From NCBI RefSeq assembly GCF_006345805.1, contig NW_021832920.1, positions 1 to 31,097 on the forward strand: a stretch of 31,097 nucleotides of DNA. Direction: 5' to 3'. Positions 8,008 through 26,672 of this stretch are shown in pieces (the first letter of the stretch is position 1; every line of letters begins with the position of its first letter). Origin of the DNA: Octopus sinensis (taxonomy: Eukaryota). Below the pieces are notes generated by a model. It ran no database searches. It was given only the letters and a program-made list of their open reading frames with translations, and had not been told where the DNA came from. The translations under genes were made by a program, and so were the position numbers.

Positions 8008-8052
8008 ACAAACAAGTTCGTGACAGGTTTCAAAATGATCCGTTCAAAAAAG
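8008..8052 (+). CDS. Candidate 45-nt coding exon of the vWA gene (xKQVRDRFQNDPFKK)
   Basis: Acceptor TTATTTTTCTTTCTTTCCAG and donor AAG|GTGAAT. Phase 1-1 with no stop. Joins in frame as ...PFKK-A-CGGVPAE to exon 12259. Confidence 0.55.
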
Positions 8053-8624
8053 GTGAATATATCAAATTTCTCTTTTACTGATATGCTTGCAGATTCCTCT
8101 TGGATGTGTGAGTGTGTGTGTGTGTGTGTGTGTGTGTGTGTGTGTGTGTTGTGTGTGTGTGTGTGTGTGTGTGTGTGTGTGTGTTTCTGTGCGGTTGTGG
8201 GGTAATGTTAACAAGAAAGTGCTATGTCTCCTTGAGACGTGGTTTCGAGTCCAAAGTACAACTTTCATCTTTTTCAATCCCAAACAATTTTCCGATGCCA
8301 TTATTTGTAGCTTGATGAGACCTCCTAGTGAATTTGTGAAAAGGTGGGTGACCGTGGCAAAAAAAATGGTTTGTGACAAAAAAAAATGGCCTTGCTCTAA
8401 CTGTACACCTCTAGATTGGAGGACAGGAGAGAGGGCTTGTGCCTTTGGTGGTCCGAGTAATCCTGGATCTATGGGGTCCCTTGATTGGCCCAAGTTGGAG
8501 ATTCTCCTAGATCAGGATGAATGAAATATTCATGGGTTCATTTTGTATAATATGTATACTTTTGTAGCATTCGCCGTCATTTTCTTCCTCTCACCTTTTC
8601 CGTAAATCGCCCTCCCCCAAATTA

Positions 8625-8880
8625 TATGTCAATTCTGATTTCTCTGACATATTTCTCGAACTTGGTTCTTAGTTCTCCGAGTGCCCCTGCAACCGCCGGA
8701 ATGACAGACATTCTCCTCATAGTCCACACACTTGCAATTCCCCCTTTTAGTACTCTGTACTTTCCAGTCTTTCCTTGTTCTTTGTCACTTATGTGTGCAT
8801 CCCCAGGTATGCAATACCTATGATCCTGGTTTCTTTTTTCCCCTTATCTACCACAACAATGTCTGGTCTCCATCATAGAA
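8625..8880 (-). mobile_element. Degenerate R4/Dong-like non-LTR retrotransposon, restriction-like endonuclease remnant
   Basis: Frameshifted translation RPDIVVVDK..KETRIIGIA-PGDAHISDKEQGKTGKYRVLKGGIASVWTMRRMSVIPAVAGALG fits the PD-(D/E)xK RLE C-terminus. Confidence 0.75.
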
Positions 8881-9367
8881 GTGAGGTTACAGGAGCTTGC
8901 TGCTATAATCAAATTACAGAACAAGGTAAAACCTGAAGTAAAAGAACAGCTAAAGCAAAACTTCCTCCCGAAGCAGAAGGAAAATTTCCAACAGGACACA
9001 GCGTCAAAAAGTGGTTTCAATATATTTGTCAACACGTGCTTTCTCGCAGATAAAATAATTCTCGGTTCCGCTTGTTACTATGGAAACAGGCATGAATGTG
9101 TTTGTGGCTTACAATTGGCTAAAATTACCCAAAATTTTCAAACTTTAGTCGCTAATAACTCTATTGATTTATATCAAAAATGATTTTCACGTCATTCATC
9201 AGCCTGAATAAGTGTATCATTACACTGAAATCAATTCGAACAGAATTGATGCTGACAGCCAAACCGATTAGACCCGAATATTCCTCTTCTAATAGGAATG
9301 GCTTTGATTTTTATGAGTCCCTCTTTTGTCTGGAGCTGTAGAACTGTAGCCATTAATTCATGGAATA

Positions 9368-9763
9368 TCTTTATATATAAAAGTAAGGTTGTGTGTCTGT
9401 CTACTCCGATTTAGATTCCTAACTGCTCCCACATTTTGCGGTGCAGTTTAACCAAAACCGGGTATCTTATAGTCGTGATTCATATCGAGCCCTTCTGGCT
9501 ATTAGAGCGCGTCTACGATGAGTCTACGATTTTAAAAATAATTTACCATCATTTTTTTCCCATTTTAATGCATTTTTTCGCTATTATAAGGGAAGTAACT
9601 CTCTAAAAATGTCTACGATGAGTCAACGATTTAAAAAAAATTTACCATCATTTGTTTTCCAATTTTAATGCATTTTTTTGCTATTTTTTTGGCTATAACT
9701 CTCTAAAAATGCTTTATAGTTATTTCCCTTACAAACCCGAGCAACGCCGGGCGATACTGCTAG
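9368..9763 (+). mobile_element. Non-autonomous Helitron, subfamily 1 (396 bp)
   Basis: A|TCTTTATATATAAAAG ... CCCGAGCAACGCCGGGCGATACTGCTAG|T. Confidence 0.9.
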
Positions 9764-9984
9764 TTTTATATATTTTATTATTGGGTGCTACCTTGTTCAT
9801 GGCTAGTGTGTCCAGGATCTATGTGTGGGGAATAAAGTCAAAAGCCTTTGGCAACAATCTCTTGCTTTACCTCTTCTTTTACCTCAGGTACACCTTGTTC
9901 TGCAGTTTTGTATTTGAGTAGTATTTTTCTTCTACCTGTTGTTTAGCAGAGTTGCTTGCATACTGATTTCATTAAGGACTGCTT

Positions 9985-24592: not shown

Positions 24593-24678
24593 GTAAGTAA
24601 AGCAGTTCAACGCACACACACACACTAATGCAGTTGCATGTACCCATGCACACACATACGCACACTTGTACTCATATA

Positions 24679-25060
24679 GGAGCACTCCGTCGGTTGCGAC
24701 GATGAGGGTCCCAGCTGATACGATCAACGGAACAGCCTGCTCGTGGAATTAACGTGCAAATGGCTGAGCATTCCACAGACAAGTGCATCCTTAACGTAGT
24801 TCTCGAGGAGATTCAGCATGACACAGAGAGTGACAAGGCTGGCCCTTTGAAATACAGGTACAACAGAAACAGAATGAAAGAGTGAGAGAAAGTTGTGGTG
24901 AAAGAGTACAGCAGGGTTCACCACCACCCCCTGCAGAAGCCTTGTGAAGCTTTAGGTGTTTTCGCTCAATAAACACTCACAATGCCCGGTCTGGGAATCG
25001 AAACCGCGATCCTACGACCGCGAGCCCGCTGCCCTAACCACTGGGCCATTGCGCCTCCAC
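24679..25060 (-). mobile_element. SINE family A (tail 1), full length
   Basis: 12-bp TSD TGTACTCATATA at 24667-24678 and 25061-25072. Confidence 0.92.
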
Positions 25061-25179
25061 TGTACTCATATATAGGGTTGGCCAAAAGTCACCCGGCAGT
25101 GTAAATCAAAATTCCATAAATAACTTAATAATTCAATTTTATTTATTCGTTCTGATCGTGAATAATTGAATGCTGTAAG

Positions 25180-26220
25180 GGCGGCGAACTGGCAGAAGCG
25201 TTAGCACACCGGGCGAAATGCTTACCAGTATTTCGTCAGTGTCGCGCTAAATCTCCTTGAGAACTACGTTAAGGGTGTACATGTCTGTGGAGTACTCAGC
25301 CACTTGCAGGTTAATTTCACGAGTAGGCTGCTCCGTTGATTGGATCAACTGAAACCCTTGTCGTCTGGAAGTGTGTGATTTCATGGTTGTTTGAATTGCA
25401 TTTCTATCCGGTTGAACCGATCTATGAGCAAAGTTACTTCAGCTGACAATAATGTAATGGCTGAAAAAAAAAATGGCTGAAAAGCGGCAAGATGGTAGAA
25501 CCGTTAGCGCATCAGACAGAATACTTAGCGACATTTCTTTCCGGTTCGTTAGGCTCTGAGTTCAAATGCCGCCGGGGTCAACTTTGTCTTTCATCCTTTC
25601 GGAATCAGCAAAATAAGTTGATCTCTGGGATTGATATAATCGACTAGACCCCTTCCTCTACGATTGTTGACCTTGTCCCACAGTTTGAAACCATTTTAAG
25701 GGAGTGAAGACCATTTGATAATACGTCTCTCCTTTTATCATATTTTATAAATCTGTAAGCCTTGTTTCTTCTTTTATGTTGCTCTTTCTAGCATCCCATG
25801 ATGATCCCAGCAAGGGTCGTTTCTTAACTTATGCCCATGAATCAATTGCTAAACTTGGTGGGTGCCTTAAAAAGTGAAACATCCTTCCAATGTTGCTCAT
25901 TGTAAAGGTGGCGAGCTGGCAGAACCGATAACACGCAAGGCAAAATGCCTAGCAGTGTTTTACCTGTCTTTTACGTTATGAGTTCAAATTCCGCCGTGGT
26001 CGACTTTGCCTTTCTTCCTTTCGAGGTCGATGAAATAAGTACCAGTTGAGTATCAGGGCCCGACTTACCCCACCCCCAATATTGCTGGCCTTGTGTCAAA
26101 ATTTGAAACCAATATTTAGACAGTGAGCTGGCAGAACCGTTAGCACGCCTGATGAAATACCTAGCGGCATTTCGTCTGTTTTACGTTGTGTGTTCAAATT
26201 CCGCCAAGCTTGACTTTTTT
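25180..26220 (+). mobile_element. Cluster of diverged SINE family C copies, the first fused to a family A tail
   Basis: Family C heads/bodies at about 25180, 25487, 25907 and 26122. 25240-25365 matches the family A tail (GAGAACTACGTTAAGGGT...GTCGTC). Confidence 0.7.
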
Positions 26221-26667
26221 CCCCAGATGAGAAATCTCAGCTTATGGCGTTTAAACATCACAATATACGTTAAGTATGTAGTATTGACATTTTTATTATT
26301 ATTATAAAGTAGAACTGCTGTTATTACATATTTAGAATTTGTTTTGCTTCAACATAGCTGATTTGATTTCACATTTGAAGTGACATGAATACAAGGCATT
26401 GATAAGCGGCAACTTTGACGAAATACGTATCTGGGCTGATTTCGTTTAGCCCGCCAAAATATTCTGTTTTTTTTTTACGCTACATGTCTTTAAAGGGAGT
26501 TTTCACGGACGAAAAGCTGCTGCTTCTGGTTTTAAAACAACAGAGGTTAAGTTATTTATTATTGTTGTTGTTGTTGTTGAACAATGTAATCGCCGTTAAT
26601 TTTTTAAAACTTAATTTATATTAACTGATTTATAAATTTAATCGAGTCTTACATCTTTTTTTTTCAG

Positions 26668-26672
26668 TTTAA
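26668..26672 (+). CDS. Candidate terminal exon (completes Leu, then TAA) followed by 3' UTR
   Basis: Strong acceptor CTTACATCTTTTTTTTTCAG. The phase-1 join C|TT TAA ends the protein ...DRLCRL*. AATAAA occurs at 27395 and 27621. Confidence 0.45.

Follow-up and report, generated by a model that had tools for sequence, protein, structure and literature searches.

The contig NW_021832920.1 of Octopus sinensis (assembly GCF_006345805.1; 31,097 nucleotides (nt), forward strand), referred to here as the window, holds the last six of the eight coding exons of a real O. sinensis gene, LOC115229655. Its product carries two von Willebrand factor A (vWA) domains, termed A1 and A2, on either side of a Pro/Thr-rich linker, and very probably acts, once secreted and O-glycosylated, as a cross-linker in mucus or extracellular matrix.

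Through splice-site reading and in silico stitching, six exons of the gene were joined into a single open frame of 401 codons, which is followed by TAA. A polypyrimidine tract and an AG lie upstream of each of the 6 exons, donors of the form GT(A/G)(A/T)G(T/A) follow every exon but the last, and all introns are of phase 1, with A, P, P, G, and L as the split codons. An earlier note, written from the letters of the window alone, had placed the same six exons in one frame with GT-AG, phase-1 introns, and every segment and split codon that it gave is correct; its figure of about 390 codons is somewhat low, but the frame is open as described. The program-made list of open reading frames (ORFs) contains only two fragments of the gene, 11715-12947 and 24259-24600, just as the note had remarked. 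The first of these is inflated to 410 aa, with runs of poly-Ser, poly-His, and poly-Leu, because it reads through a (TCA)n microsatellite (11841-12230; about 130 units), which ends approximately 28 nt before the acceptor of the A1 exon. No other vWA-like coding sequence was found by tblastn in the window, including the stretch 26673-31097. The six-exon chain is far beyond chance, as the stitched protein has 100% identity to a database entry, and two O. vulgaris genes, the ortholog and a paralog, have the same exon borders, as does Argonauta hians. The coding exons are as follows:

8008-8052, forward strand: coding exon 3 of 8; 45 nt, phase 1 on both sides; encodes (D)KQVRDRFQNDPFKK
12259-12828, forward strand: A1 exon; 570 nt, entire first vWA domain, with DSSRS...T...TDG and the flanking Cys pair
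16433-16480, forward strand: linker exon; 48 nt, Pro/Thr linker (P)PTTTPPPTTPPPKEQ, probably an O-glycosylated spacer
20034-20201, forward strand: A2 exon, first third of the second vWA domain; 168 nt, with DSGML at the position of the metal ion-dependent adhesion site (MIDAS)
24221-24592, forward strand: A2 exon, remainder of the second vWA domain; 372 nt, FLKG replacing TDG; ends ...RLCR
26668-26672, forward strand: coding tip of the terminal exon; 5 nt (TT TAA), completing Leu and the stop; the 3' untranslated region runs on downstream

The stitched protein matches P0001 (XP_029655835.2/UniProt A0A6P7U0U0) at 100% identity and 100% coverage, and the gene call for this record (7929-26672 on VCDQ01005058.1; 31,097 bp, GCA_006345805.1) lies on the window itself. 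The gene is therefore already annotated in RefSeq/UniProt, but it is misnamed. The RefSeq model represents the same gene on the same contig with the same six exons and junctions, down to the micro-exons of 45 and 48 nt and the 5-nt tip, so that the gene is not hidden, as the earlier note had described it; the note had also expected automatic annotation to mislabel the gene or to miss its micro-exons, of which the former came true and the latter did not. The product name given by RefSeq is "collagen alpha-1(XII) chain". This name is wrong, since the protein has neither a triple helix nor FN3 domains. Pfam reports VWA only; a Gly-X-Y triple-helical (COL) domain is absent, the conserved stop follows directly after A2, and nothing homologous lies downstream. 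Likewise, the FN3 and TSPN domains of collagen XII and the FACIT (fibril-associated collagens with interrupted triple helices) group gave no Pfam match at E<=1, and neither the EGF-like modules nor the coiled-coil PF10393 that mark matrilins were found by Pfam.

The RefSeq model differs from the gene at its 5' end, where an N-terminus derived from a microsatellite has been added and the true signal-peptide exons are absent. The added N-terminus amounts to 27 residues, which match no homolog compared. It is judged to be an artefact, namely a read-through of the acceptor at 8006-8007 into a (TGTA)n microsatellite array (6918-7977), forced by the truncated contig; this judgment follows from its (TGTA)n origin, from the missing match in homologs, and from the splicing of the O. 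vulgaris gene at an identical acceptor, ctttctttccag.

7929-8007, forward strand: RefSeq extension of the coding sequence (CDS), starting MYVCKHVFMYVCLYVRKPKSYFSFFP... (also written MYVCKHVFMYVCLYVRK...), with 27 extra N-terminal residues
1-8007, forward strand: 3' part of intron 2, from colinearity with the O. vulgaris locus L004; the window starts inside this intron

The likely true 5' end can be read from the O. vulgaris ortholog (P0016, CAI9740923.1), a 96%-identical protein of 435 aa that falls into the same 90% cluster. On the chromosome record OX597838.1, this ortholog has eight coding exons. Exon E1 encodes MWFTTLSLLTLAVTA and exon E2 encodes FAFSVDSNTLQTFLRDLQ, while exons 3-8 match the six of O. 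sinensis one-to-one, with identical acceptor and donor sequences. The 45-nt exon shows 0 differences between the two species, and the 48-nt linker exon and the terminal coding tip are likewise identical. The window is colinear with positions 19934-49163 of L004, in which exon 2 ends at 18472, i.e., approximately 1.46 kb ahead of window position 1. Because synteny begins only at this distance past E2, the contig starts inside intron 2, and both signal-peptide exons lie off the window. The "six-exon" gene of the earlier note is accordingly two exons short, whereas its statement that the signal-peptide exon is missing from the window agrees with the mapping of E1 and E2 beyond the contig start. 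O. vulgaris exons 1 and 2 with their flanks gave no blastn match in the window, and scans of 1-8007 for phase 0-to-1 mini-exons between AG and GT, with homolog peptides as the basis of scoring, and for ATG-started hydrophobic mini-exons with a GT donor returned repeats only. The N-terminus of P0016 is signal-peptide-like (MWFTTLSLLTLAVTAFA), and from this 96%-identical ortholog a signal peptide is predicted for the O. sinensis protein.

The same exon structure is found at greater distances. For comparison, the Argonauta hians protein P0002 and the O. vulgaris paralog P0004 were mapped onto their own loci. Together with the ortholog, they share a two-exon signal-peptide region, a phase 1-1 exon of approximately 42-45 nt, and a first vWA domain on a single exon; both P0002 and P0004 further have a small linker exon, a second vWA domain split into approximately 168 and 375 nt, and a phase-1 intron directly after the conserved C-terminal Leu-Cys, which is followed by a tiny coding tip. 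This tip reads cag|GATAA in the paralog, cag|GATTATCTTAA in Argonauta, and TTTAA in O. sinensis, and the paralog and the O. sinensis gene can be seen to resemble each other in the sequence 3' of the tip. In Argonauta, the exon homologous to the 45-nt exon has 42 nt and the same phases and encodes NNDGLAVRDHFQK, the Pro/Thr mini-exon encodes VPTTPPPLDE, and the counterpart of the 168-nt A2 exon is 75% identical to it. In addition, a 1575-nt, intron-free transcript contig of a related species (SRR24189504) encodes a 474-aa homolog of the same architecture in one ORF, which stops five residues past the last conserved Cys of the family.

The mature protein has approximately 400 residues and consists of a short N-terminal segment, the disulfide-bracketed A1, a 15-residue Pro/Thr spacer, and A2, and it ends two residues (R-L) past its last Cys. 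Pfam VWA (PF00092) is matched by A1 with 125.7 bits and by A2 with 59.8 bits (cut-off 23.8), and no other family is matched. In vWA domains, the MIDAS is formed by DxSxS after beta1, a Thr in the alpha3-alpha4 loop, and an Asp after beta4; it is typical of these domains, though not obligatory. A1 has a complete MIDAS (DSSRS, GGTTQT, ITDG), whereas A2 has lost it and contains DSGML and FLKG at the corresponding positions. Each domain is bracketed by conserved cysteines (C43/C230 for A1 and C249/C426 for A2, in P0001 numbering). Both halves are therefore true vWA domains, of which A2 retains the fold and the cysteines without the metal site. The earlier note had called A2 a "pseudo-vWA", which is apt for the lost metal site but not for a domain that scores well over the cut-off.

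An AlphaFold2 (AF2) model, built from a 12-sequence alignment, has a mean predicted local distance difference test (pLDDT) score of 78. Values are approximately 90-95 for A1 and 60-90 for A2, and fall below 50 at the N-terminus and at residues 233-247 of P0001, on which basis the Pro/Thr linker is predicted to be disordered. Both halves of the model show the alternating strand and helix order of the vWA type. Structure prediction, which the earlier note had recommended, thus returns two alpha/beta domains of vWA type and a disordered linker, and the order that the note had proposed, i.e., a MIDAS-bearing vWA domain, a Pro/Thr linker, and a MIDAS-less vWA domain, is borne out by Pfam, the motifs, and AF2 together. 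In a Foldseek search against the Protein Data Bank (PDB), the top matches of the model were to PTMP1 (proximal thread matrix protein 1; 4CN9, 4CN8, and 4CNB), over approximately 410 columns with an E-value of 8.5e-23, 23% identity, and a root-mean-square deviation (rmsd) of approximately 17 A, so that the relative orientation of the domains is either not conserved or not predictable. Next came the integrin alpha1 I domain, vWF A3 and A1, and the collagen VI alpha3 N2 and N5 domains, with single-domain template modeling (TM) scores of 0.8-0.88 and an rmsd of approximately 2 A. Searching the solved structures by sequence placed collagen VI alpha3 first (2e-80, summed over many domains) and PTMP1 second.

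Through a profile search, two-vWA proteins of approximately 376-462 aa (409-462 aa for complete models) were detected in O. sinensis, O. vulgaris, O. bimaculoides, Argonauta (P0002 and P0003), Patella vulgata, P. caerulea, and Lottia (LOTGIDRAFT_134694). The homology search suggested by the earlier note thereby yields, besides the perfect match to XP_029655835.2, an octopod and limpet family. In all full-length members checked, A1 has DxSxS and TDG, A2 lacks DxSxS and has FLKG or FIGG instead, and the protein ends 1-8 residues past the conserved Leu-Cys; two fragmentary O. bimaculoides models with one domain each agree for the domain that they retain. Family members begin with a signal peptide, and wherever their introns were compared, positions and phases agree. 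The linker varies from 10 to approximately 60 residues, and identity to members other than the ortholog is 32-53%. The O. sinensis gene shares the family traits of a MIDAS-bearing A1, a Pro/Thr linker, a MIDAS-less A2, a short tail, and phase-1 introns. A homolog search with the second domain alone returned a single fragmentary O. bimaculoides protein.

Family genes lie close to one another. O. vulgaris has three on one chromosome (P0016, P0004, and P0030), two of which are approximately 180 kb apart on the same strand, with the loci L003 and L004 at approximately 30.11 and 30.30 Mb of OX597838.1. The two Argonauta genes are on one contig (L002, BAAFZT010000066.1), Patella has several per chromosome, and those of P. 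caerulea include the near-consecutive tags SNE40_003537, _003541, and _003542. This clustering points to tandem duplication in several lineages. On the other hand, matches in bivalves and vertebrates are ordinary multi-vWA or matrilin proteins with an intact MIDAS or extra EGF and coiled-coil domains: the bivalve relatives have three vWA domains, and the vertebrate matrilin matches contain PF07645 and PF10393. These data define a small, coherent two-vWA family, shared by octopods and patellogastropod limpets and multiplied by tandem duplication, in which the MIDAS-less state of A2 is conserved. The names of its members are all automatic (collagen VI/XII-like, cartilage matrix protein-like), and no functionally characterised member was found in the search.

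The protein is made and is present in samples of mucus, according to shotgun proteomics of O. vulgaris skin mucus (supplement of PMC10138644). High-confidence peptide-spectrum matches (PSMs) for LNDPSGVAAR and FGTVAGPCNK were assigned to A0A6P7U0U0 and to the 454-aa ORF Cluster-58773.155036, which ranks 60th in the protein table at a false discovery rate (FDR) <1% and is covered to 31% by 12 unique peptides (34 PSMs). FGTVAGPCNK maps to the exon 20034-20201 and LNDPSGVAAR to 24221-24592; both are fully tryptic and, among all homologs fetched, occur only in the O. sinensis protein and its ortholog. These two unique peptides support the mucus role that the earlier note had cautiously put forward. 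In a study of limpet adhesive mucus, the commonest domains are vWD, EGF, Kazal-type serine protease inhibitor, and SRCR, not vWA, and no link from that study to the Patella homologs was found.

The secreted cross-linker could work as follows. The protein would be secreted via the signal peptide, as is expected from the signal-peptide-like start of the ortholog, and the threonines of the linker (TTT/TT) would be O-glycosylated. A1 may bind an acidic side chain of its ligand through the MIDAS cation, by analogy with integrin I domains, vWF A domains, and PTMP1-collagen, while A2 may supply a second, metal-independent surface for binding or self-association. With both domains together, the protein would act as a bivalent cross-linker that bridges or organises polymers of the mucus or the dermal matrix. 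A broader proposal, which must be regarded as unlikely at present, is that a mollusc-restricted secreted two-vWA mucus family combines a fast-diverging ligand face of A1 with an anciently MIDAS-less A2 into a tunable cross-linker or recognition module; if true, the family would determine how the mucus of cephalopods and limpets behaves mechanically or in defence.

Several points weigh against the secreted cross-linker. The O. sinensis splice junctions are deduced from genomic DNA and comparison. Among the PSMs listed, neither the junction-spanning tryptic peptides VYGFALNR and ACGGVPAEIVFIIDSSR nor four other tryptic peptides of the protein were found, and the identity of Cluster-58773.155036 with the gene rests on shared peptides. 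The mucus samples also hold hemocyanin, myosin, and other tissue proteins (PMC10138644), so that presence in them is no proof of secretion into mucus. Lastly, the comparison of O. sinensis with O. vulgaris gives no sign of purifying selection, the two species being too close, and constraint is shown only by the deeper comparisons.

The main rival to the mucus role is that of a dermal or connective-tissue matrix protein, an analogue of matrilins or of the collagen VI N domains, which bridges collagen fibrils and enters the mucus as tissue debris. This is possible, albeit with clearly lower probability. The mucus proteome is rich in non-secreted myosin, filamin, actin, and tubulin, and in collagens, and the closest relatives in structure or sequence (PTMP1, the collagen VI alpha3 N domains, vWF A3, and integrin alpha1 I) bind collagen. 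However, the Pro/Thr linker is mucin-like and the architecture small and soluble, which suits a secreted mucus component equally well, and the peptide-sharing ORF, with its rank and number of PSMs, stands above many abundant housekeeping proteins.

An improbable alternative is a mucosal recognition or defence factor, in which the MIDAS face of A1 would bind foreign or variable ligands under diversifying selection and A2 would serve as an anchor. The CDS of O. sinensis and O. vulgaris differ at 21 positions, 17 of them nonsynonymous and 4 synonymous, which gives a ratio of nonsynonymous to synonymous differences per site (pN/pS) of 1.27, not significantly in excess of 1; exons diverge by 1.7%, no less than introns (substitution divergence approximately 1.0-1.5%). 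The A1 exon differs from L004 31735-32304 by 13 nt and 12 amino-acid changes, 9 of which fall on the MIDAS face, in its loops or at the starts of its helices (binomial p ~0.011, for regions defined post hoc, after the data had been seen). The A1 pattern could mean that the ligand face evolves fast, or it could be mere noise; the numbers are too small to claim selection. The tandem duplication of the family in octopods, its expansion in Patella, and the enrichment of vWA proteins in the mucus proteome that is noted by the skin-mucus study also speak for a recognition factor. Against it, the counts are small, and in any domain the surface loops tend to be under the least constraint.

It is very improbable that the transcript continues into downstream collagen, EGF, or further vWA domains, as in collagen XII/VI or the matrilins. 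The collagen name in RefSeq and the three vWA domains of the bivalve relatives would fit such a transcript, and the earlier note had named a continuation past 24592 as the outcome that would speak against its gene. Nevertheless, the stop and the terminal micro-exon are conserved in the ortholog, the paralog, and Argonauta, the homolog in the transcript contig stops at the same place, and downstream there is no vWA segment in 26673-31097 by tblastn, in keeping with Pfam matches to VWA only. A pseudogene or annotation artefact, i.e., relic exons in frame by chance that encode no functional protein, is close to refuted: although the RefSeq N-terminus is artefactual, two 5' exons are off the contig, and the sister-species comparison shows no synonymous excess, the frame is open across six exons with canonical splice sites that are identical in O. 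vulgaris, Argonauta and Patella have kept the architecture, tandem mass spectrometry (MS/MS) recorded two unique tryptic peptides, and the missing 5' exons are explained by the contig boundary, since the chromosome-scale ortholog has both.

The earlier manual reconstruction was hence correct, and its interpretation largely so, of a gene that was already annotated. The value as a discovery is small, in that the gene, its micro-exons, and the protein are in RefSeq/UniProt and a skin-mucus proteome already includes the protein. What is new is that the 5' end is truncated, that the N-terminus in RefSeq is artefactual and the product misnamed, and that octopods and limpets share a coherent two-vWA family; this family is of possible interest for mucus mechanics and bio-adhesives. 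No mention of XP_029655835, A0A6P7U0U0, or LOC115229655 was found in the main texts of the papers searched. The RefSeq record would profit from correction, its N-terminus being artefactual and the true first two exons lying off the unplaced contig.

The introns and flanks of the gene contain several repeats. A 158-bp unit is present six times at 98% identity in the intron (10093-11040), and the array is a recent copy-number expansion in O. sinensis, since the O. vulgaris ortholog has only approximately 2 copies (L004 30215-30532); at its 3' edge lies a 66-aa ORF on the minus strand (10944-11144) with no Pfam match. A repeat of approximately 385 bp that resembles a short interspersed nuclear element (SINE) occurs four times, at 1091-1480 (-), 13781-14160 (+), 20471-20856 (-), and 24681-25060 (+), one copy lying approximately 90 nt downstream of the 24592 donor. 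It has at least 5 copies in the O. vulgaris locus and an identity of 90-97%; ARAGORN found no tRNA-like head in it, and an Rfam scan of the window gave no match. A repeat family of approximately 400 bp has three intronic copies (5564-5976, 9365-9776, and 19600-19999), each with an internal tandem of 2 x 100 bp, and one copy ends approximately 35 nt upstream of the 20034 acceptor. A 184-bp unit forms a tandem of 3.6 copies at 88% identity (3046-3714), probably a satellite-like or SINE-derived array; related copies lie near 28672-29016, and others are scattered through the rest of the window and the O. vulgaris locus. A second (TCA)n tract occupies 28480-28639. Pfam gave nothing meaningful on four miscellaneous intronic and flanking ORFs.

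Among known systems, the octopus protein most resembles PTMP1 of the Mytilus byssus, which has two vWA domains and binds collagens (PMC4754843). PTMP1, too, comprises nothing but two vWA domains, in a molluscan protein that is secreted, as is predicted for the octopus protein; over both domains, no solved structure matches better. The differences are considerable: identity is 23%, both PTMP1 domains align best to octopus A1, and both keep D-x-S-x-S and TDG-type motifs in the alignments, in contrast to octopus A2; moreover, the aligned domains of PTMP1 abut (approximately 13 residues apart), whereas a Pro/Thr linker predicted to be disordered separates those of the octopus protein. Orthology with PTMP1 was therefore rejected, on account of the alignment of both domains to A1, the low identity, the rmsd, and the missing MIDAS of A2. 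To our knowledge, octopods have no byssus. The collagen VI alpha3 N domains, the matrilins, vWF A1 and A3, and the integrin alpha I domains have the same vWA fold, the MIDAS chemistry of A1, and the bracketing cysteines, and they further resemble the octopus gene in placing an entire vWA domain on one phase 1-1 exon. The octopus protein differs from these systems in being without a triple helix, EGF modules, a coiled-coil, or a transmembrane partner, and in standing alone as a two-domain protein.

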